Shown piece by piece: positions 8,118 through 55,111 of a stretch of 64,000 nucleotides of DNA. Where the stretch lies: the sequence record MW272540.1. One strand, given 5' to 3'. Within the stretch, counting starts at the first letter, position 1. Each line of letters starts with the position of its first letter. Both the position numbers and the translations under genes were made by a program. The notes beneath the pieces are model-generated. The model was not told the origin of the DNA. It did not search any database and saw only the letters and a list, made by a program, of their open reading frames with translations.

Positions 8118-8927
8118 TTAATAGTAAACGACTAAACATTCTTGAACTTTTTTACGATTGCTACCATCGCTACTTACGGTTCTCTGTAAATCGAATAGAT
8201 GGATTTCATCTGCGTCGGAATAGAGATTTTCTGTATATGGAGTCCAATGATTGCTTATCATTGCTACACTATTACACTCTTTCGATAATTTTTTTAATTC
8301 TTCTTGTTGTTCTAAATTGAACCCGTCTTTGGTGTATTTGAAATTGGAAGTGAGTGGTACGTATGGTGGATCTGAATAAACAAGACAATCATCACGACCT
8401 TTGATAAGTTCAAATATTTCGGAGAAGTTTTTGTTGTGTAATTCAGTATTGTCTCTGTGTTTTTCAGATAGAGCTATAATACTATCCGATGGAACGACTT
8501 TCGGGTTTTTTGTAACAGTCCCTTTACTAACGTTAAAAAGTCCATTTTTATTATACCTACAGAGTCCATTGAATCCATGTTTATTCAGATATTGGAAAAT
8601 CGCAGCTCGTTCAACTTCATTAAATTTTCCAGAATTGAATTTATCTCGGATTGCTTCATATGAGTCAAACCCAAATTCAAACAACCTTTTTGAAATTTCA
8701 ATGTACTTTTCTGGTTCTTTAAACATAACGTTATAACTATCAATTAAATCTTTATTATAATCATTCCAGATATATCCTTCTGAATCATAATTTAGACTAA
8801 TATTAGCTGCACCAATAAATGGTTCTACCAATATTGATTTCTTAAAATTATTTAATATTGGGAGGACGTGAGGGAGAGCCCTCGATTTACCACCAACCCA
8901 CTGAAATGGACTATTAACATATTTCAT
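8118..8927 (-). CDS. dam: DNA adenine methyltransferase (T4 Dam-like, alpha class)
   Basis: PFQWVGGKS, LVEPFIGA (motif I), NKHGFNGLCRYN, VYSDPPY (motif IV). Confidence 0.93.
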   Translation of the reverse strand: MKYVNSPFQWVGGKSRALPHVLPILNNFKKSILVEPFIGAANISLNYDSEGYIWNDYNKDLIDSYNVMFKEPEKYIEISKRLFEFGFDSYEAIRDKFNSGKFNEVERAAIFQYLNKHGFNGLCRYNKNGLFNVSKGTVTKNPKVVPSDSIIALSEKHRDNTELHNKNFSEIFELIKGRDDCLVYSDPPYVPLTSNFKYTKDGFNLEQQEELKKLSKECNSVAMISNHWTPYTENLYSDADEIHLFDLQRTVSSDGSNRKKVQECLVVYY

Positions 8928-9173
8928 TAGAATACCAATCCTTTAATTTTTACCAAGAAACGATCTTCATCAAATGGAGATACAACAGCCCGCCAACCAG
9001 AACAATCCGGATAACGATCATAGAGAATTTCTTCAACTGCACGATAAGAAGAATCCAACCATTCCCAATTTTCACCAGAACTGTTTTCTTTAAAAGTTTT
9101 ATTCGCTTCGTCTGATTCTACCAACAGAGCAAACAATGGGTCATTACTTACTACTTCAAAATATTGATTCATA

Positions 9174-9740
9174 TCAAGCCTTCTCTTTCCACTTTGCAAT
9201 TTTCTTTTCCATAGTAGACAGGAAAAGTTTCTCGATCTCTTTCGGTTCCATATCACCACAAGAGAGTGCGAACATATCCATAGCAGCGATAGCCAGATCT
9301 ACAGCTTCACCAGCAATACCGTCCTTACCACGTTCTTTATAAGACAGACCGTTTTCAATCTGAACCTCGACCGACAGCTCTCCGAGTTCTTCAACACACT
9401 TGGACATAACATAATCGTATGTGCGTTTTGGACTATCGAACGGTAGACCAAGACTAACCGATGTTTCGAAGATAGAGGACAAAGCTGGTTCTTTTTCGTT
9501 CGCTTCTTCCACAAGTTCAAGAATAACATCTTCGTCTTTTGGAGCGGCAAAACACCAAGCACCATGATCATAGTATGGATTAATGGCGACACCCTGATAA
9601 CTAGCGTCTCGGGTGTAGAGATAACCAACTTCGTCTATGTAATGACATGTGACAATAGAACCAGCGGAAACACCATAGACATCACAAAAACTTGGCTTTG
9701 CATACACAACTCGATATTTTTTATTCAGTTCATATTTCAT
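9174..9740 (-). CDS. MazG-like nucleotide pyrophosphohydrolase with an extra N-terminal domain
   Basis: C-terminal KCVEELGELSVEV...EAVDLAIAAMD matches the all-alpha NTP-PPase EExxE...ExxD motif. Confidence 0.75.
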   Translation of the reverse strand: MKYELNKKYRVVYAKPSFCDVYGVSAGSIVTCHYIDEVGYLYTRDASYQGVAINPYYDHGAWCFAAPKDEDVILELVEEANEKEPALSSIFETSVSLGLPFDSPKRTYDYVMSKCVEELGELSVEVQIENGLSYKERGKDGIAGEAVDLAIAAMDMFALSCGDMEPKEIEKLFLSTMEKKIAKWKEKA

Positions 9741-10310
9741 TTAAACATTTCCTCTAGCCGTTGACGATTACCTTCAAATCTGGCTGCTTTTGTTCTTTCC
9801 ACACTCGCAAGCCACTCGTCAATTATACACAAAATTTCCCCGGTGTGTAGTCCGTCGTTTAGACAATATGTTTTATCATCTTTGGTTGCGTAAAATTCAT
9901 AGTCCTTTTTAGTTATGGTAATACCTTTTGGTGTCACAATATGGTCATACTCGGGGTCGTATACACCGATACGCATTTGTTGAATTATTTTCATAACAGG
10001 TTACTCATTTTTAACAGAGACCTCGATACTCTCATATACACATTTGACATCGAAGCCGTTTTTCTTAAATTCTGGGATCAAATACTGTCGGATAAAATCC
10101 CAACGACCGATTGTTACCTGCGGACCTGCGTCAAATAGGAAATTATCAACATCTCGTGATTCTACAATGTGAAATGTTACTTCCATATCCAACATTTCTT
10201 TTACTATCTGATCATATAACGTTTTGCTTAATGTTGGAAGGTCTTTTTCTCGTTCTTTCTGATTGATACCAATCTGTTTAACTAACTCAGCTGCGTTCAT
10301 ATTTTATTCC

Positions 10311-43588: not shown

Positions 43589-45124
43589 TTATTCTACCAG
43601 ACCAGCGAGAGCGCGGGCTTTAACATCCTTCCAGATTTGGAAGTTAACAAACTTACCGTCGCGGAAAGAAAGTTTCAATTCACCAGTTTCAAATTGTTCC
43701 ATGGTTTGGTTTTCATACAGAACATATTCGCCGTTTTCCTTCTCTACTCGCAGCAGACCCCGAGCGGATTTTTTGCTATCCAGAGCGGTTTTCGGGTTCT
43801 TCTGCATGGACACATGAAGGTCATCGATAATGGAGTGAGTACCCTTGATTGCAATGGAGTAGCTATCGCGGGAAGCATTCTTGAGGAAGCCCCAGCTACC
43901 AACACCCATCAACACGTTAGAGATACACCAGCCACGAGCAATCATACCTTGTTCGATCTTGTCTTGCATTGCACCATCAATCGCCTCACCGTAGATGATC
44001 CCGATTTTCGGATTCAGTACACGAAGACCCTTTTCATTGACAGTACCACCGAAGGTATCCCACAAAATTTGCAGGGTTCCTTTGCGTTCGAGTTCATCGT
44101 CAGACTCATCATCACCCACGATAACCTCAAACGGGGTTTTCGGGCTACTGTCAGGACGAACTACAAACTTACACAGACCCAAGGAATCCGGGGTACGAGC
44201 TTCGATTTCAGGTTGCAGGGCTGCCAGATCCGAAGAGATAAACCGATAGTAATCTTCAGAGTCAGAAACGTAACTCAGGATCCCGGTCGGATACACGTTG
44301 ACCAGAAGGTCACGGACACTCTCACGCTCGGCATGTTCGAAGCCAAGAACGTTACGGTAGTAGGCGATACGCTGGGTTGCGGTTGCATGTTCAAACGCAT
44401 TCACAGAGCACCCAATCAGCTCATTGTCGCTGTTTGCTCCATAGTAGTCTTCGATATAGTCGATTGCCCAACCAGTGTCAGTACCTGCACTAAACAGCAT
44501 ATGACCCATACCGGAGATAGTGGAATCCTCAATACCACGATGTCCGCGAGCAGCAAAACAGTGGAATGCGATTTCAAGCCAGAAATCCGGAGCACCAGAC
44601 CGTTCCATCCACTTCATGGCGGTTTTACGGTATTGACCAGAAACCATCGCAGCATTGCTCATGGGCCAAATCATTGCGCTCAGGTATGTTTCCAGATAGT
44701 TAACCAGCCAGAAGAATTCATCCAGAGTGTTGTTGACTACAAACAGGGGAATACCCATGTTTACCCAGTTACCTTCTTCGATAGAGCGAACTTCTACCGG
44801 GAGGTAACCAAGGTCATGAAGCTTCTTCATTGCTTCAACCATGGATTTACCGTGTTCCGGACCAATGGAGTTTTTCAGACGACGGGCGAAACGCTGAACA
44901 ACCTTCACTTTCGGCTGTTTGAAGAAGTTTTGGTCCCATTGCTCAACAAGATGAGCCAGTGCATATTGCAGACCAAAGAACACCATTTTACCGTTCGAAT
45001 CAATTACGTTTGCGTATTTGTCTGAACGTGGGGTCATGTTAGAAAATACTCGGGTTGTACCCTTGCAATATTGATCAATATGGCTCCATTTGTAGAAGTC
45101 GGACGTCATGTGTGGATATTTCAT
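43589..45124 (-). CDS. nadV: NAMPT/NadV-family phosphoribosyltransferase (probable NARP1 Namat)
   Basis: TSDFYKWSH, FFGLQY, HCFAARG, AFEHAT, SYVSDS, VVRPDS, IIYGEAI, MGVGSW, KNPKT...KKSARGLL. Confidence 0.9.
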   Translation of the reverse strand: MKYPHMTSDFYKWSHIDQYCKGTTRVFSNMTPRSDKYANVIDSNGKMVFFGLQYALAHLVEQWDQNFFKQPKVKVVQRFARRLKNSIGPEHGKSMVEAMKKLHDLGYLPVEVRSIEEGNWVNMGIPLFVVNNTLDEFFWLVNYLETYLSAMIWPMSNAAMVSGQYRKTAMKWMERSGAPDFWLEIAFHCFAARGHRGIEDSTISGMGHMLFSAGTDTGWAIDYIEDYYGANSDNELIGCSVNAFEHATATQRIAYYRNVLGFEHAERESVRDLLVNVYPTGILSYVSDSEDYYRFISSDLAALQPEIEARTPDSLGLCKFVVRPDSSPKTPFEVIVGDDESDDELERKGTLQILWDTFGGTVNEKGLRVLNPKIGIIYGEAIDGAMQDKIEQGMIARGWCISNVLMGVGSWGFLKNASRDSYSIAIKGTHSIIDDLHVSMQKNPKTALDSKKSARGLLRVEKENGEYVLYENQTMEQFETGELKLSFRDGKFVNFQIWKDVKARALAGLVE

Positions 45125-45141
45125 TTTCTCATTTTCCTATG

Positions 45142-45149
45142 TCTAAATA
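45142..45149 (+). promoter_or_regulatory. Late promoter for the antisense homing endonuclease
   Basis: TCTAAATA 17 nt upstream of the ATG, with a GAGGT RBS. Confidence 0.6.
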
Positions 45150-45165
45150 AAGTTAGAGGTATTAT

Positions 45166-46128
45166 ATGTCAAAAGATTTCATCATTACAAGAATAGATAA
45201 AGAATTTATTGGTTCAGAATTTCCAACACCACAAGGCGGAACAATAAAAGTTACCGGGGTATTCGGAGTGGATAAAAACAGAACTAAAATATTCACATCA
45301 ACTTGCACTATTTGTTCCAAGGATACAGAGCTATATCCCAACGAATTTACTTGCTTAAAAGACCACCTATTGAAAGGTTCTGTTCCTTGTGGGTGTTCAA
45401 AGAACCCTTCTTTAAATGAAGCTCAAAGGATAATTCTCATAAACAGGATACTATCTAAAGAGAAATATTCTTTCAACCACTTTATATCAGGTTACAAAAA
45501 TAAACATTCTAAATTTTCTTATGAATGTCCAGATCACGGACAACAAATAACATCATACCAAAGTTTTAGCGAAGGTAGACGTTGTTTGGAATGTTCAAAA
45601 GACAGAAAACGTCATTCCAATGCAGAAGATATTATGGTTTCATCTTGCGAAAGTCAAGGATTAACTTTCATTGGTTTTGAATCGAAGTATGAAAATCAAA
45701 AGTCAAAAGTAATTTATAACTGCCCAAAACACGGAAACCATACCACAGAATTTCGAATTTTAAAATCTGGTCATGGGTGTCCTGCATGTAAATATACAGG
45801 GTTTGACGTTCATAAGCAAGCATTTTTATATCTTGTAAGATGGAAATCCCAATCTGGAAAAACTTGGTTGAAGTATGGAATAACAAACAACCCAGTGGAA
45901 TTTCGTATAAAAAGACAACAACAAACCCACGAATTAGAAACCGGTGAATTTATAGAATATGAAATTCTTCATACCAAAAAAGGGTTGGGCTCTGATATCA
46001 AATCAATAGAGTTGTTAATCAAACGTCAATTCCCACATTCCGGTATATCAAAATCAGAAATGTGGGACGGGTATACAGAGACATTAGAAGAAAAACATCT
46101 ATTTGATATTTTATCAATAATTAGTTAG
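45166..46128 (+). mobile_element. Free-standing homing endonuclease (Zn repeats + GIY-YIG-like), inserted antisense
   Basis: FPTPQGG...CTIC...KGSVPCGC shared with 10311-11405; C-terminal FLYLVRW...LKYGITNN..RIK; only convincing plus-strand gene. Confidence 0.8.
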
Positions 46129-46653
46129 CCGACTTCTGTCGGTTTTTTCTTAAAACACAGAATAACCATACCAATAATAAAGTCTAAAAATCCAGTAATA
46201 GCAAAAAACAAAACGGAATACATGATAAAGCTAGGCCAAAAACCAAAAAACGCAGTTCCCAAAACCGTGAACGTTGCACCTGATGACACCAAGATTAAAA
46301 ACAACGCTATGAGTGCCAGACCAATCAAGGACCCAATCGCACCAGACTTCAAATAATCATCTCTAGACATATAATTCTCCAATCAGTTTAATTCACCAAA
46401 CAATAAAGACCCAACCGCGATATTATAAACGAAACTTTTGATTTCTTCATCAGAAGACCCAGAATTTTTCATTTTTATCATAACATCCCGGACTTTTTGA
46501 TTTTTTGTTACAAGATCGATTCTCTCGTTTAGGATAGACATCATTTCTTCGCTCATAAAATCCTCATGAATTAGTCGGGAATAGGTGGCTGATCAATCAA
46601 CCACCGTAAGACTATACTAGCATAGACAATCTTCTTGAGTCAACAAAAAAATA

Positions 46654-47457
46654 TCAAACGGTCCAATCATATTTGCAATATACGTTGTCGATGAATTCGA
46701 TATTTCGACCCTTAGAGAATACCCCATGGGTAACATACAAGTCAACTTGTTTCGCACCTTTTTCTTTTAATACTTTTGCAAGTTGCATGAAAGTAAACCC
46801 ACCCTCACAGAGATCGTCTACGATAAGAAGAGTTTTTCCATTAACATCCCCTAGAACTTGGGGGTTTGACAATTCTCCTGTAGAAACGTTGCGATGTTTA
46901 CTTGCTTGGATTACATCTTCAACACCTGCTTCAGATGCAACCTTATAAACTTTTTTCAGTGCACCACCATCAGGACTAACGATTGCATCATAGTTATTTG
47001 CATCCAAACCTTCAACACCAATGATACTTTGATTGATATTTTGGCAGTTGTTTAGAAGGGCGACCCCAACATCACTATGACAGTCATCAACAACTACCAA
47101 ATCGAAATTCATGGAATTGATGAAGTTACAAAACACCTTCAATGAAAAACTTTCACCTTTGACCATTACACGGTCTTGTCTGGCGTAAGGAAGGTATGGG
47201 ATATATAGTTGATAGAATGGTTTTGTTACAAACAATTTATCTAATGCATCCTTTAAAATGGCTAGTTGCATAATGTCACCATCTTTGATATCCGCATAGA
47301 TTGATACAACCGACTTCGATCCAAGTTTAATAGCTAAACTTGGATCGATTTTAACGTTGTGTTCTCCACAGTTAAATCGATGAAAATCAAAATCAATCAT
47401 AGTGGTGGATGATAGATCATCCACATTACCAATAACCACTTTAAATTTATTCTTCAT
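46654..47457 (-). CDS. prs: Ribose-phosphate pyrophosphokinase-like protein (probable NARP1 Adps)
   Basis: FNCGEHNV, PYLPYARQDR, DCHS, VSPDGGA, ASKHR, LIVDDLCEGGFTF, VTHGVFS. Confidence 0.9.
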   Translation of the reverse strand: MKNKFKVVIGNVDDLSSTTMIDFDFHRFNCGEHNVKIDPSLAIKLGSKSVVSIYADIKDGDIMQLAILKDALDKLFVTKPFYQLYIPYLPYARQDRVMVKGESFSLKVFCNFINSMNFDLVVVDDCHSDVGVALLNNCQNINQSIIGVEGLDANNYDAIVSPDGGALKKVYKVASEAGVEDVIQASKHRNVSTGELSNPQVLGDVNGKTLLIVDDLCEGGFTFMQLAKVLKEKGAKQVDLYVTHGVFSKGRNIEFIDNVYCKYDWTV

Positions 47458-48025
47458 TTTTAATTACCTTAAATTCTATTTGCTTGAAAGTACACCCTCT
47501 ATGGGTATTTCTTTTTCCTGATACAACTGCATGTACTAACCGATAATCAAATCCGCGATACTTCATTTCGTCATTACCAACCATTATACCAACAATGGTA
47601 TTGGTTTTGTCAAGAGCAAATGTGGTATATTTTCCTCTAATTGAAAATCTCCCAACATCTTTCTTTTGAAGTCCAATTTTATATGCATGAAGGGCGTTTT
47701 CTTGGTTAGTAACCCACTCAAGATTAGAAACATTATTATTGGTTTTGTTTCCATCTTTGTGATTTACCTGATAATCATCAAAACAACCATTCAACGGGAT
47801 GAACAACATAGCAACCATACGATGGATTCTAAAAGATGCCTTTACTTTACCAACCCCGGTACGTATTCTGGGGTATCCACATCGGTCTAATTGAGTCTTT
47901 AGGATCTTGGGTTTGACAATCGCACCTCTACTAGTAACTCGTTTTACACTTTTAACTAAACCTGTACTACTTACGTCAAGTTGAATACCGGTTTTTTCAT
48001 CCTTAAATCTTTTCCAAATTTCCAC
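47447..48025 (-). mobile_element. NUMOD4-HNH homing endonuclease
   Basis: VSSTGLVKS, HRMVAMLF, VNHKDGNKTNNNVSNLEWVT..ENALHA. Confidence 0.9.
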
Positions 48026-48043
48026 CTATTATACAAACCCCAT

Positions 48044-48508
48044 TTAAAATATGTATTGTTCTCGAATATCACCCAAGATATCAACAAACTCAGATTCTGT
48101 CAATATGGTATTTGTGGGATCTTTACATCCCATGGTATGGGTCAAATCTCCGTCTTTGGACATTTCCAAAGCTTTTCTGAATTTTGGGCACTGTTCAAAC
48201 ATGGAAAGATACGCATTGTAGATCAGACCGTCATATGCATCAGATAACCGGTGCATAGGTTGCCCCTTATAATACAAGGTCTGTTCTTTTTTCCAACCCT
48301 GAAATTTCTTCCCCATACGATATGCCCCAATACCATCCAATCCATAAAATTGTTCTGCTTGGAATGGGTCTGCACACTTTAGGGACTGTAGGAAAGCCTC
48401 AATACATCTGTATTGGATACCGTCAAATGTAAAATGGTGTTCATGTAGATTCGATAATGTTCTCTCTACGAAATCACCACTACCAGAGTATATATCATAG
48501 ATTTTCAT
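48044..48508 (-). CDS. 30.3: NADAR ADP-ribosylhydrolase (T4 gp30.3/AdfN-like)
   Basis: LSNL...FTFDGI....EAFLQSLK...FRKALE...LTHTMG..DPTNTILTESEFVDIL aligns with T4 gp30.3. Confidence 0.85.
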   Translation of the reverse strand: MKIYDIYSGSGDFVERTLSNLHEHHFTFDGIQYRCIEAFLQSLKCADPFQAEQFYGLDGIGAYRMGKKFQGWKKEQTLYYKGQPMHRLSDAYDGLIYNAYLSMFEQCPKFRKALEMSKDGDLTHTMGCKDPTNTILTESEFVDILGDIREQYIF

Positions 48509-50239
48509 TTTTAAAGAATAAAAAAGCTACGGATTTCAATTCCCCATTTTCGATCATCCTACCCATAGAGAAGTCTGTATATGAGGTAATATTTTCAACT
48601 GCCTGACCCATTCGATAGATATGTTCCAGCATTTTTGATTTGTCTTTTAATTCAAACCGAATAACCCAACGGGGTTGACACCCAAAATCGGCACGTGTGT
48701 ATTCTGTGATTGAAATATGAACATGATCCCGTAGGGTTTTCAGATTTGTTGGTTCGAACCATTCAACACATTGAGCTTTTTTCTGGATTGTCGCGATTAC
48801 TCTCCCCAAAACAAATTGGTTGGTGTAGTCGTTTTCTTTGTTAACAATTCTCTCACCAAACGCATCAATTTCGTTTTGAAAAAACTTTCTTACATAAGTA
48901 GAGATTTTCATAATATTCCTTAATTTAGAAGGTGTCCGTATTTATTTTGGATATTATCATAGTCGTCACCGTATTGACAAGACTTATCTTTTGCCAATAC
49001 GATTTCAGCCGAGATGAATCGTTCGAAATATCCTGTAATAAACCAAGTAGAGATTTTTTGACGCTTGTCCTTGTCTACCCACATCATCATATCATCATAG
49101 ATATCGTCACTCGTAGCCCAAGGCATTTTTTGAAGGATTTTCTTTAGATTATTTTCTTTATCTTTAGTCAATCCCCAATCATTGAATGCGTTATAGAATT
49201 CGATAAACTGCATCAACTCTTCATACCCGGTCAATGCATCATCATATTGCTTCCAAGCAATACCAAGGGTATCAGAAGTTTCATATGATTTGAAGCTATC
49301 CCCAGTGACATAATTAACTTTAATTTCATAGTGCATTGTATTATCGCTCGTTAAGGATTTTTCTTACTTCGAGTGAATATTTATCTCGCTCTCGCTCGAT
49401 TTCAGAAATATTGTTTTGGATCTTTTCCATCTCCAACGTATATGCGTGGATCCGGTCATTGAATTTTTTCATATCGCAACGAATAATATCAAAAACTGAC
49501 ACTTCTTTTTCAGTTTTTTCAACAGATTCGTCAATGTTTTCATTCTTATTCGTAGAAAGTGTGTTGTAAAAAACGATGGTAACTCTGTCCACACCTTTTT
49601 CAACGGTTCGAGTAACCGAGATTGGATAGACCAACATGTTTTCTGCTACGTGTGAAAACACCTTGTAAAAATATCCCATGACTTTCATATGACCGTAAAT
49701 ATTAACATTTTTGTTATAAATTGCAATTTTATGATTACCATGTATGTCAGTAGACCGATTAATACAAATCGAATTAGACATCCTGAAAGAGGTAGGTTCA
49801 AAAGGACCTTTATTTTTTGCCACAATGCGACCAACCCGAGCAATAAACGCACCCATAGTGTTGTAGTTTGCCAGATTAAACACTGGCGCATCTAGACCAA
49901 CACTAACATTCTTTAGAAGAACAGACCCATAAACGTCGGTCATGTTCGAGAAATAGTTACTAAGATACTTTATAAGATTTTGATTTTTCATTTTATCTCC
50001 TTATTTTTCTACTTTATATTCGACTTTCTCACAACGAAGGCTCTCCAACTCGAATAATTTTGTTGTCTCTTGTTGGAGTTTAAGATCGCATACAGATTTT
50101 GTTGTTGCTAGTTCTACTTGGAACTCCTCACAAACGATTGTGTTGTTTTCGGAAATTACACAAGAGGTAAGAATCAAAGCAAACAAAGTTTCCATATTAT
50201 ATTATCCTCGTTGTTTTCTATATGGACATAATCCCAGAT

Positions 50240-51523: not shown

Positions 51524-52495
51524 TTATTTTCCTTCAGTAATGATGATATCACGATAATATTGATAGATGTAGTTATTCCAGTATTCCATATCAACTTGTT
51601 CTGGCATACCGTTTTTTGCAGCTTCAATAGCTGATTCTTCTGCAAGATCCATGATGTGTTCCAAGTACGGTTGAACCTCAGTATTGAAATCCAACTTACC
51701 TTGTTTTACATCCTTGATATATGATGCATTTCGTAAAGGGAATTTTAGGTCACCTGTCGTATAGATTTCATAAAGCTGTTCTGCCCCACGAATCGCGTGA
51801 CTCATCGCCTTCCAATCGATACCGGTAGAAGCCTTTTCAGCTCTCGCACCATACTCAGCTTTGATCTTCAAGATCTGTTCAACAAATTCAGAATAACGGA
51901 TCCCAAAAAGATATTTACGACCAAGAACCTCATAATAGTAAACCAACTGGTGTGACGGGTCAACAAATTTCCCAACAATCAAATTTTCACTTTGTGGCAT
52001 ACCAGAAACTAATGACCCAAGCCGGTCGTTTCCATATTCTGACACAGGACGATTCTCGATGAAGGATAACACAGAATTCAATTCTTGTAGCCTAGAACCC
52101 TTCACGCCGTATTTCGACGCCTGTTTACGTACATACCCTAGGTATGCTTGCATCTTTGTCGTATAGAAGCTTGTACGCTGTTCCCGAAGATGTTGAAATA
52201 CAGGATCACAAGAGAGAATCATGTTTTCTGGCGCATGAAGCATATCGATAGCGGCGGTTTCACCCTTCGCAGCCATTTGGATAAATTTCTTAAGAGAAAA
52301 ATATTCCCGGTCAATATCGTCAGATGTGTTTGCTTTTCCTTTAGCCCCGGTATCTCGATGGTATACTTCTTTAGTACCCATAATGATCTGTTGTGGGGAA
52401 GGAATAAATACACCCTTATAATCGGTGTCACTCTCTGGTGTATCCGTACCATAAAGACGGGAACCAAAAACACATTCGTAAATTAGTCTACTCAT
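51524..52495 (-). CDS. nrdC.11: Nucleotidyltransferase (T4 NrdC.11-like)
   Basis: FGSRLYGTDTPESDTDYKGVFIP, GETAAIDML, YLGYVRKQASKYG, DWKAMSHA.R, DLKFPL. Confidence 0.88.
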   Translation of the reverse strand: MSRLIYECVFGSRLYGTDTPESDTDYKGVFIPSPQQIIMGTKEVYHRDTGAKGKANTSDDIDREYFSLKKFIQMAAKGETAAIDMLHAPENMILSCDPVFQHLREQRTSFYTTKMQAYLGYVRKQASKYGVKGSRLQELNSVLSFIENRPVSEYGNDRLGSLVSGMPQSENLIVGKFVDPSHQLVYYYEVLGRKYLFGIRYSEFVEQILKIKAEYGARAEKASTGIDWKAMSHAIRGAEQLYEIYTTGDLKFPLRNASYIKDVKQGKLDFNTEVQPYLEHIMDLAEESAIEAAKNGMPEQVDMEYWNNYIYQYYRDIIITEGK

Positions 52496-53923: not shown

Positions 53924-54675
53924 TTATTTTTTTGCAAAACAATACCAAAAGAGAAGGAATATGACCGGTCTGCCTCAACACAGTAGATATCAATGAATCC
54001 GTGTTCACTGTCGATAGTCACTGTGAATTTTTCCGACCCGTTATCTCTAACCATCTGGTCGTATGTCAATTCATCTTCGAAAAAATCCTTTCGCAGAACG
54101 GAATCATAAAATGTCATGGAGTTTCCATCACCGTCCCAACCATCCCATTCCTTAATAAGGTTTGTTTCATACCCTAATGTGTTTGTCTGCCAGACAAAAA
54201 ATTCGAGGTCAGAAAGGATCCGGTTAATTTTACATTTAGTGATGTGGGTGTTGTCCAGTTGGTCCAGTTGGTCAACAAAATCCCAGAAGTTTTTGTCCAT
54301 ATATTGAACAAATTCTGTTGGGCTACCACGGCTAGTATAACGATCCATGAAAATTTCTTTCAAAGCATTGTTTTCGTTTTCAGCCCAGATTGAATGACGT
54401 TCATCTACTTTCTTTTCTGGGTAAACTAGATAGATATCAATCCCCTGATCCACCAGACCCTGAATTACTTCCGGATGGGTAGAAACAAAAAGAAAGTCTA
54501 CTTCGTCCCGCTTAATCTCATCAAAAATAGCAGAAAGGTAGTTATCCGGAAATTGGTCTTTGTTGAATTCAGACGAATCCAGATCTTTTACTTTATATTG
54601 AACGAATTTATTGTTTTTCGTCAGAAAGGATTTCCCAGAACCGGGAAATGCACTATATACTTTAACTTTACTCAT
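53920..54675 (-). CDS. P-loop nucleotide-kinase-like protein with a C-terminal extension
   Basis: AFPGSGKS (Walker A), DLDSS, FVSTHPEV. Confidence 0.7.
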   Translation of the reverse strand: MSKVKVYSAFPGSGKSFLTKNNKFVQYKVKDLDSSEFNKDQFPDNYLSAIFDEIKRDEVDFLFVSTHPEVIQGLVDQGIDIYLVYPEKKVDERHSIWAENENNALKEIFMDRYTSRGSPTEFVQYMDKNFWDFVDQLDQLDNTHITKCKINRILSDLEFFVWQTNTLGYETNLIKEWDGWDGDGNSMTFYDSVLRKDFFEDELTYDQMVRDNGSEKFTVTIDSEHGFIDIYCVEADRSYSFSFGIVLQKNN

Positions 54676-55111
54676 CTTCCATCTCTCTGTTTCTAAAGGC
54701 TATAAAGCTCTCGATATAACCTTTAATGTTTTCCCGACCAATCGGGTTTTGTGTGTGATAATAAATGTGTTCCGGAAGTTCCAGATTATCATATTGCGCA
54801 ATATCGATCAAATACTTAGCACAAGACAATCCATTATATTCTACACCATCTTCATCAAAATCCGCTAGATCATGGTCAAAGCTGATGTACTTCGGGATCC
54901 CGTTATTCCGGATCTCTTCTTTGAACTCTGCGTAATTTCGAACGATTACCCATTGAATATCGTGATCGTAATTCATCCAAAACACATCAGACGGGGTTCT
55001 TTCGTCATCAATGAAAATACCCCGGAATTTTTTACTCAGGTGCTGATTGACTCGATACATCCCAATCAAAATGATGATCAAACCAATCATAGAGAGTACG
55101 TAACCAGTCAT
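54668..55111 (-). CDS. Cyclic-phosphate-processing receiver-like domain protein
   Basis: IFIDDERTP, VRNY.EF, ISFDHDL, GLSCAKYL, HTQNPIGRENI. Confidence 0.82.
   Translation of the reverse strand: MTGYVLSMIGLIIILIGMYRVNQHLSKKFRGIFIDDERTPSDVFWMNYDHDIQWVIVRNYAEFKEEIRNNGIPKYISFDHDLADFDEDGVEYNGLSCAKYLIDIAQYDNLELPEHIYYHTQNPIGRENIKGYIESFIAFRNREMEDE

Follow-up and report, generated by a model that had tools for sequence, protein, structure and literature searches.

The first 64,000 bases of the 230,916-bp record of Aeromonas phage ZPAH1 (MW272540.1; this stretch is referred to below as the window) contain an island of genes concerned with ADP-ribose. ZPAH1 is a T4-like virus belonging to the genus Ishigurovirus (Straboviridae, Emmerichvirinae). 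The island comprises genes for a putative Namat-like nicotinamide ADP-ribose transferase (43589-45124), a putative Adps-like ADP-ribose diphosphokinase (46654-47457), and a putative gp30.3/AdfN-type NADAR ADP-ribosyl N-glycohydrolase (48044-48508). The three genes were found where a first-pass annotation of this DNA had placed them, all on the minus strand, an orientation shared by almost every gene in this region; the block that holds them is a leftward early gene block. Over the 6 kb around the island the sequence is 100% identical to the ZPAH1 record at the same coordinates. We read the island, with a probability of about 0.6, as two known phage counter-defense units, a NARP1 pathway for rebuilding nicotinamide adenine dinucleotide (NAD+) and a gp30.3-type NADAR, which work by known mechanisms and are co-located. 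This reading draws on the identities of the genes, their diagnostic residues, the fold, the phylogenetic placement, the absence of a nicotinamide mononucleotide (NMN) adenylyltransferase (NMNAT), and the linkage statistics, from which we infer the enzyme activities of the proteins and the defenses that they target.

With ATP as the pyrophosphate donor, the Adps-like enzyme would convert ADP-ribose (ADPR) into ADPR pyrophosphate (ADPR-PP), which the divergent Namat-like enzyme would join to nicotinamide to form NAD+. NARP1 would in this way refill the NAD+ emptied by NADase defenses (Thoeris type I, DSR1/2, SIR2-HerA, and similar), with no NMNAT needed. The gp30.3 protein would cleave the N-glycosidic bond of the ADP-ribosyl-guanine left on phage DNA by DarT1-type toxins. 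The free ADP-ribose so released would be, chemically, the substrate of Adps, a hand-over which is taken here as a side benefit and not as the reason for the genes. Their adjacency is best read as a cluster of anti-defense and ADP-ribose-processing genes.

The Adps-like and Namat-like proteins

The Adps-like protein (267 amino acid residues; PF00156, PF14572, and PF13793; phrog_619, E 1.5e-80) shows 37% identity to the Adps of Vibrio phage ICP1, for which ADPR-PP synthesis has been verified biochemically (PMC13586617), 37% to the Felixounavirus (Bas63-type) Adps, and 30% to E. coli Prs. The ICP1 residues involved in ADP-ribose binding and catalysis, F18, R87, H121, D161, K185, D212, and D213, are all retained (ZPAH1 equivalents: R93, H127, D163, K187, D214, and D215), and ICP1 F92 is replaced by Met, as it is in the Felixounavirus protein. 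The pyrophosphate (PP) loop, DDLCEGGFTF, is of the Adps type (DDICDGAASF in ICP1; DDMIDTGGTL in E. coli Prs), and the protein stops short of the C-terminal helices α11-α12 of Prs, which serve filament formation and regulation. The curated Prs equivalog models of NCBI give it 105-108 bits against cut-offs of 296-297; it fails all of them, as does ICP1 Adps, while E. coli Prs reaches 532. In a tree that has E. coli Prs as its root, the ZPAH1 protein nests among phage Adps, including those of ICP1 and Felixounavirus, and groups with metagenomic relatives (82%, 70%, and 66% identity) in a small group which is sister to the other Emmerichvirinae Adps. Collectively, these sequence features support the reading of the Prs-like protein as an Adps.

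The best solved relatives of the Namat-like protein (511 amino acid residues; PF04095 and PF18127; phrog_448, E 1.6e-165) are 9W5X/9W5W (E 6e-91), which the paper of the depositors identifies as SPbetaL1 Namat (PMC12774641); human and rodent NAMPT match at 1e-38. For the second-best structural match, 9KE8/9KEO, no paper naming these PDB entries was found. Phylogenetically the protein lies inside the Adps-associated clade, split (100/100) from NARP2 as represented by two NadV proteins, one from a KVP40-like phage and the other from Aeromonas phage 31.2; its identity to NARP2-type NadV is 27-28%. The residues through which SPbetaL1 Namat holds nicotinamide and the ribose-phosphate of NMN are all retained, the core (H187, F189, R192, D215, R306, D308, G360, G390, S391, R399, and D400) being identical. 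Beside this core, Asp188 is replaced by Cys (HDF to HCF) and Asp361 by Glu (GD to GE). In the clamp loop (TPRSDKY) Lys36 is followed by Tyr37, the pattern also seen in ICP1 (KY) and Felixounavirus (KW) and in agreement with the published one, that is, either Arg, or Lys/Tyr followed by a stacking residue.

A search for the NMNAT-type domain PF01467 at E <= 0.1 found none in the window or in the whole 230,916-bp record, with all 14 of 14 control genomes positive, and the first-pass statement that the window lacks an NMNAT can be extended to the entire ZPAH1 record. The accompanying claim, that a Prs-like and a NAMPT-like gene together have the composition of NARP1, is supported by the Adps hallmarks, the placement in the Namat clade, the missing NMNAT, and a previous listing of both genes; phylogenetically the two proteins group with Adps and Namat, apart from Prs and from KVP40-type NadV. 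In the preprint of Osterman et al. (2024), MW272540_00120 is found among the Prs/Adps homologues of Table S1 ("Namat within 10 genes: Yes") and MW272540_00116 among the NadV homologues of Table S2 ("Adps-associated"); the NARP1 call for ZPAH1 is, therefore, already catalogued. A Namat homologue is present within 10 kb at 79 of 80 viral loci with an Adps relative.

Certain features weigh against treating the pair as a NARP1 of the characterized kind. The published clamp-helix signature of Namat reads GS-X-phi-X-phi-X-phi-TRD, with aromatics at positions 3 and 7; the ZPAH1 helix, GSWGFLKNASRD, is one residue longer and carries Trp at position 3, Phe at 5, and Lys at 7. Throughout the clade the helix reads GSWGFLKN[AS]SRD, with Lys or Asn in place of the second adenine-stacking aromatic. 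Furthermore, Glu replaces the Asp which contacts the AMP phosphate in SPbetaL1 Namat (Asp361); the Namat-like protein scores 359 bits with NF006629 (NCBIfam), below the cut-off of 405 passed by both ICP1 Namat and KVP40-type NadV; and the Adps tree includes a single cellular Prs, that of E. coli, as its outgroup. Because of the altered clamp helix, the Asp to Glu change, and the score below the NCBIfam cut-off, the donor substrate of the Namat-like enzyme could differ.

Under such an explanation ADPR-PP would adopt another pose in the Emmerichvirinae enzyme, or the donor used would be a different nucleoside diphosphate ribose pyrophosphate (NDP-ribose-PP). Besides the low NF006629 score, this explanation can call upon the GE motif, the clamp helix, and a two-residue insert after RPDS (RPDSS-PK), all of which are restricted to Emmerichvirinae among 90 aligned Namat/Nampt sequences, and upon the long stem of this clade in the tree (1.22 changes per site). 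It has to contend, however, with a partner Adps that retains the ADP-ribose-binding residues of ICP1 Adps, with the pairing of the same Namat with two Adps subtypes (see below), with the aromatic Trp kept at clamp position 3, and with a clamp loop that matches the published pattern. The clamp motif is, moreover, a consensus and no absolute rule, since single positions deviate in other working lineages (Cys at position 7 in Pakpunavirus; Thr at position 5 in a 146-kb lineage). We consider an altered donor unlikely, and regard the protein as a member of the Namat clade by descent and context, forming a divergent Emmerichvirinae subtype which presumably is specific for ADPR-PP.

GenBank labels the two genes as phosphoribosyl pyrophosphate (PRPP) synthetase and nicotinamide phosphoribosyltransferase, in line with classical nicotinamide salvage, where the Prs-like enzyme would make PRPP, the NAMPT-like enzyme NMN, and the NMN adenylyltransferase of the host would complete NAD+. 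Also compatible with this are the passing of the TIGR01251 subfamily cut-off by the ZPAH1 Adps-like protein (125.6 vs. 113 bits), a clamp helix which is partly Nampt-like, with Lys at the position mimicked by the Y396K mutant, and the finding that SPbetaL1 Namat retains approximately half of the PRPP activity of human Nampt in vitro (PMC12774641). Nevertheless, both proteins fall in the Adps and Namat clades, outside Prs and the NARP2 Nampt, and the Adps-like protein possesses the Adps-type PP loop, has lost the C-terminal regulatory helices of Prs, and fails every Prs equivalog cut-off. According to the literature a phage PRPP-type Nampt is accompanied by Nmnat in 94% of cases, whereas ZPAH1 has none. 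Classical salvage is, in our opinion, highly improbable, and the pair is treated in what follows as NARP1.

Some further observations concern the Namat-like gene. The HDF to HCF change next to the catalytic His was considered as a special trait and dismissed, since it is present in another Namat lineage too. The G+C content of the gene is 47%, versus 38% in the window. An antisense open reading frame (ORF) of 462 codons (43637-45025, plus strand) covers it; several Namat genes have long antisense frames of this kind (312-482 codons) in one reading frame, with lengths that vary among close relatives, and this one is probably a codon-usage artifact and no gene. The record of phage 65 (NC_015251; L003:9884-11414) divides the Namat-like gene into two annotated parts of 463 and 41 amino acid residues, either because the gene is broken close to its 5′-end or because the record contains a sequencing error; a full-length protein is given for phage 65.2 in the published table.

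The gp30.3-type NADAR

The third protein (154 amino acid residues) belongs to the gp30.3 family, PF08010 (E 1.7e-32; 112.5 bits against a cut-off of 36), and is ~35-38% identical to Tequatrovirus gp30.3. T4 AdfN requires its residues E36 and K43, and the RB69 allele is inactive owing to a truncated C-terminus (PMC11257639). Alignment with Tequatrovirus gp30.3 places E37 and K44 of the ZPAH1 protein at these two positions; its C-terminus is full and the C-terminal helix is present (residues 138-152). Among 51 gp30.3 homologues E37 and K44 are invariant, and His124, which is the "phage NADAR" histidine of Schuller (2023), is nearly so. The AlphaFold2 model (predicted local distance difference test [pLDDT] 97; predicted template modeling score [pTM] 0.92) has as its credible PDB matches YbiA (2B3W; E 2.8e-5), the NADAR of G. 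lovleyi (8BAT), and that of P. nicotianae with ADP-ribose (8BAU), all others having E > 2. A sequence search of PDB with gp30.3 gave no match, and hhalign against NADARs was not significant with a shallow gp30.3 alignment and, with 51 sequences against PF08719, was still weak (E 8e-4; probability 25%). The naming of the gene as a gp30.3/AdfN-type NADAR in the first-pass annotation is borne out by the family, the catalytic Glu and Lys, and the NADAR-matching model.

Neither a Nudix domain nor a PF08719 NADAR was found in ZPAH1, and none of the ORFs of the island has a RyR, Macro, or Nudix domain. T4, unlike ZPAH1, has a Nudix gene, the product of which, NudE, hydrolyzes ADP-ribose. The single Macro-domain ORF of ZPAH1 (MW272540.1, 200081-200428; E 3e-5, right at the cut-off) lies outside the window and remote from the island.

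Another role for the NADAR is suggested by two genes in the same leftward block, one for a cREC_REC domain protein (54668-55111; E 4e-21) and one for an RlaP RNA-repair nucleotidyltransferase (51524-52495; E 3e-17; labeled "thioredoxin" in GenBank). For cREC, a role in opening cyclic ADPR phosphate has been predicted by other authors. As Iyer et al. (2022) tie cREC and NADAR to ADP-ribose derivatives of RNA repair, the NADAR might, together with these upstream genes, clear ADP-ribose by-products of RNA repair instead of opposing DarT. The two genes are, however, 3-6 kb away with many unknown genes between, KptA/Tpt1 (PF01885) was not found in ZPAH1, and an anti-DarTG1 role has been demonstrated for T4 gp30.3 (PMC11257639). 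We hold an RNA-repair function to be quite unlikely, and retain the presumed anti-DarT role for the NADAR.

Directly upstream of gp30.3 are three conserved genes to which no function could be assigned (48495-48911, 48920-49336, and 49341-49991), the first overlapping gp30.3 by 14 bases. All three are retained in phage 65, CC2, avDM6, and metagenomic contigs. They matched no Pfam family and nothing in the ESM Atlas, and are not mutual paralogues.

Linkage of NADAR and NARP1 genes

The gene order gp30.3, none or one gene, Adps is common to Aswh_1, phage 65, and avDM6 (Ishigurovirus), to CC2 (Ceceduovirus), and to three metagenomic contigs. In Aswh_1, which lacks the HNH gene found between the two in ZPAH1, gp30.3 abuts the Prs-like gene. 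After Adps, all of these have two to six small or endonuclease genes, followed by Namat, a hypothetical gene, and UvdE. As this order is shared within one lineage it counts as one observation.

Wider surveys used samples from IMG/VR, the best 80 matches each for Adps relatives and for gp30.3 loci, many of the contigs being fragmentary. PF08010 was searched in the first 50 of the 80 Adps records, and gp30.3 was detected in three of these, all Emmerichvirinae. Of the remaining 77 Adps records 19 have a PF08719 NADAR above the cut-off, and in 58 of the 80 no NADAR-type gene was found. Among near-complete NARP1 records 16 of 37 carry a NADAR-type gene, a share which does not exceed the 48% given in the literature for medium and jumbo phages at large. 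The reverse survey revealed NARP1 within 8 kb of four of 80 gp30.3 loci (the three Emmerichvirinae and L153), and 76 were without it. Each unit is, then, found without the other in most of the phages surveyed.

A different picture emerges at short range, and here the observations count against the genes being mere neighbors. The 22 records that hold both genes represent 11 lineages, in three of which the NADAR is no more than 2 kb from Adps; uniform placement, a simple and lenient null, predicts 0.39 (Poisson P 0.007). Thymidylate synthase, taken as a control, lies within 2 kb in none of six lineages. In locus L057 the order is Adps, Nuc_deoxyri_tr2 (nucleoside deoxyribosyltransferase-like), NADAR, and Namat, with the genes abutting or overlapping. 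A fourth tight lineage, L153, was found from the gp30.3 side, with the order SLOG, HD, gp30.3, a few small ORFs, Adps, and Namat; because its NARP1 resembles the Bacillus phage FADO type and its gp30.3 is remote from the Aeromonas clade in the tree, the juxtaposition arose independently. In L073 the order is NADAR, SLOG, a hypothetical gene, Adps, two hypothetical genes, and Namat.

Only the tight (2 kb) class is informative, since thymidylate synthase lies within 10 kb of Adps in three of six lineages. The occurrence of a NADAR within ~13 kb was accordingly dismissed as evidence, thymidylate synthase clustering equally loosely. Adjacency of NADAR and Adps across the contig ends in L058 was likewise set aside, for the two genes are 87 kb apart in the complete relative G038. 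The first-pass annotation had named a linkage not conserved in relatives as something that would refute its possible recycling module. The linkage is conserved in Emmerichvirinae and recurs in three other lineages, but most loci are without it, and the module is neither demonstrated nor refuted. The NADAR-NARP1 linkage is facultative, yet recurs more tightly than chance placement predicts.

This recurrence admits an explanation in which the NADAR is a dedicated accessory of NARP1. It would turn N-linked ADP-ribose conjugates into ADP-ribose, from which Adps and Namat would then produce NAD+. The substrates could include the ADP-ribosyl-guanine of DNA and, perhaps, soluble signals such as His-ADPR or cyclic ADPR variants with an N-glycosidic bond. 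Together, DarT1 and a de-ADP-ribosylase amount to an NADase, a loop that NARP1 would close. In keeping with this are the retention of the linkage across two Emmerichvirinae genera and their metagenomic kin, the independent cases of L057 (inside the operon), L073, and L153, and the 2-kb statistics with their thymidylate synthase control. In addition, both genes known to be embedded in NARP1, Adpp and RyDEP, yield ADP-ribose, and Iyer et al. (2022) noted NADAR neighborhoods with NadV/NadM. The NADAR might then join the Macro phosphatase Adpp and RyDEP as a third kind of accessory enzyme for NARP1, recruited to the Adps-Namat operon, next to it or within it, in four or more unrelated lineages, a classification which we put forward only tentatively. 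Of the four tight lineages two have a NADAR of the gp30.3 type and two one of the YbiA type.

ADP-ribosyl groups on DNA are presumably few in comparison to the millimolar NAD+ pool, amounting by estimate to a few percent at most, and the flux of ADP-ribose from DNA adducts is probably small. Dedicated feeding must also be squared with the number of loci at which one partner is missing, with a co-occurrence not above the base rate, and with the leniency of the uniform-placement null. Furthermore, a homing endonuclease gene separates gp30.3 from Adps in ZPAH1 without apparent harm; T4 AdfN functions in the absence of NARP1 and appears to be adapted to the modified DNA of T-even phages (PMC11257639); and anti-defense genes cluster without metabolic links, the clustering of anti-defense and ADP-ribose-processing genes having been described by Iyer et al. 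(2022). We therefore commit to two known units which are co-located, because the linkage is facultative, the DNA-adduct flux presumably small, and T4 AdfN independent of NARP1. A NADAR feeding NARP1 strikes us as possible though rather doubtful. The parts are known and catalogued; their coupling is a reasonable and testable lead, at odds that we would put well short of even.

Few bacterial strategies against phages are as common as NAD+ depletion and ADP-ribosylation, and two studies from 2026 have shown that NARP1-embedded genes extend the pathway to new defense products. Were the NADAR a feeder, a single island would answer a DNA-ADP-ribosylating or signaling defense as well as NAD+ depletion, and NADARs, which are carried by approximately half of large phages, would gain a metabolic role. 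Even without coupling, the island offers to anti-defense annotation a naturally occurring Namat whose adenine clamp is altered and a natural swap of Adps against a constant Namat.

Other candidate accessory genes adjoin Adps in the surveyed loci (L057:9025-13265, L006:1213-6004, and L010:2062-2628); they encode calcineurin-like or metallo-phosphoesterases, a MazG-like pyrophosphatase, and nucleoside deoxyribosyltransferase-like proteins. A 310-kb jumbo-phage contig contains, 5.8 kb upstream of its NARP1, a gene (L050:3716-5449) for a protein of 577 amino acid residues with an N-terminal NADAR domain and a long uncharacterized C-terminal part.

Intervening genes and comparison with known systems

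The first-pass annotation recognized the three genes of the island, which stand, but overlooked two homing-endonuclease-type genes and two small ORFs which interrupt it, and its placement of gp30.3 immediately upstream of the Prs-like gene does not hold for ZPAH1. Between these two lies an HNH/NUMOD4 homing-endonuclease gene (47447-48025, minus strand; 192 amino acid residues; PF13392 and PF07463; phrog_59), and the Namat-like gene is four genes downstream of the Adps-like gene on the same strand. Next to Adps is a small minus-strand ORF of unassigned function (46383-46556; 57 amino acid residues; phrog_17159, of unknown function, E 3e-13), followed by a second (46125-46382, annotated as 46125-46370; 85 amino acid residues), for which a family search returned nothing above the threshold and only faint matches to membrane-segment families. 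Both are annotated as coding sequences in ZPAH1 and Aswh_1. A CapR/DUF723 endonuclease-like gene (45166-46128; 320 amino acid residues; PF21817, E 3.7e-38, and PF05265; phrog_681 "endonuclease," E 8e-80) is situated on the plus strand, with a terminator-like hairpin at its 3′-end (46127-46144, plus strand). A promoter-like site (TTGTAA-18-TATAAT, 10/12 matches; 45161-45190, minus strand) directly 5′ of the Namat-like start could drive Namat apart from Adps. The evidence for it is weak, such sites being only mildly enriched in the region (32 versus 21.7 +/- 4.7 expected in shuffles).

The HNH gene is missing from Aswh_1, phage 65, CC2, and avDM6. Comparison of ZPAH1 with Aswh_1 reveals a replaced patch of ~1.4 kb (~46660-48035), consisting of the HNH gene and the entire Adps gene, between DNA flanks which are 95-100% identical. 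Block ends in blastn had suggested a chimeric Adps in ZPAH1; this was dismissed, the sliding comparison showing that the whole gene was swapped. The incoming Adps belongs to a sister subclade which is otherwise known only from metagenomes. To judge from these alignments, the patch looks like a cassette swap with invasion by a homing endonuclease and co-conversion of the neighboring gene from a divergent donor. At the protein level the two phages share 53.5% identity in Adps, 99.4% in Namat, and 97.4% in gp30.3, from which it follows that two Adps types serve one Namat. This fits a shared diffusible intermediate, that is, the same metabolite.

Homologues of the CapR/DUF723 gene occur at varying slots and in varying orientations around NARP1 in L012 (two copies), L013, avDM6, and Aswh_1 (coordinates in relatives: L012:5206-6147 and 8816-9772; L013:1361-2173; L017:8772-9743). 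Judged by sequence comparison, the HNH and CapR/DUF723 genes are best described as selfish endonuclease insertions, the former having arrived with the swapped Adps allele and the latter being probably a mobile element that came to separate Adps from Namat. Mobile endonuclease genes appear to have a hot spot in the spaces that separate gp30.3, Adps, and Namat.

Among characterized systems the nearest to the ZPAH1 pair is NARP1 of Bas63, SPbetaL1, FADO, and ICP1 (Osterman et al., 2024; PMC12774641; PMC13586617), which has the same two families in the same order and direction. ZPAH1 keeps the catalytic and ADPR-binding residues of Adps and the NMN-side residues and clamp loop of Namat, in a genome without Nmnat. 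It differs in that two small ORFs and an endonuclease gene on the other strand come between the two genes, and in its Namat, where the clamp helix has one extra residue and no second stacking aromatic, Glu replaces the AMP-phosphate Asp, and RPDS is followed by an insert of two residues. NARP2 of Vibrio phage KVP40 (NadV and NatV) likewise uses a phage Nampt-family enzyme to rebuild NAD+, but it takes PRPP and requires Nmnat, whereas the ZPAH1 protein falls in another clade and the genome has no Nmnat.

The gp30.3 protein resembles T4 AdfN (PMC11257639) in its PF08010 family, catalytic Glu and Lys, phage-type His, C-terminal helix, and, by its model, NADAR fold. The T4 gene lies among the 30.x genes beside DNA ligase, with no NAD+ pathway near it, whereas the ZPAH1 gene is located one gene upstream of Adps (zero or one in sister phages).

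For the combination of NARP1 with a further ADPR-handling enzyme there are two strong precedents, neither of the papers on which mentions NADAR (bioRxiv 10.64898/2026.01.28.702374; 10.64898/2026.05.28.727677). In NARP1-AP of Vibrio phage Gary (Adps, Adpp, and Namat), described in the first, the product of the linked enzyme is also free ADP-ribose; Adpp is present in 15% of NARP1 operons. It is, however, a Macro-domain ADPR-1′′-phosphate phosphatase and no NADAR, and its synergy with NARP1 was shown experimentally, whereas such synergy would be hypothetical for the ZPAH1 NADAR. RyDEP, found in the NARP1 operon of Mycobacterium phage DyoEdafos and described in the second, is, like NADAR, a glycosidase, and converts an ADPR-based defense molecule to linear ADP-ribose for NAD+ synthesis. 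It has the RyR-R12 fold, to which no ORF of the ZPAH1 island corresponds, and cuts the O-glycosidic ribose-ribose bond of 2′/3′ cyclic ADPR (cADPR), whereas NADAR cuts N-glycosidic bonds.

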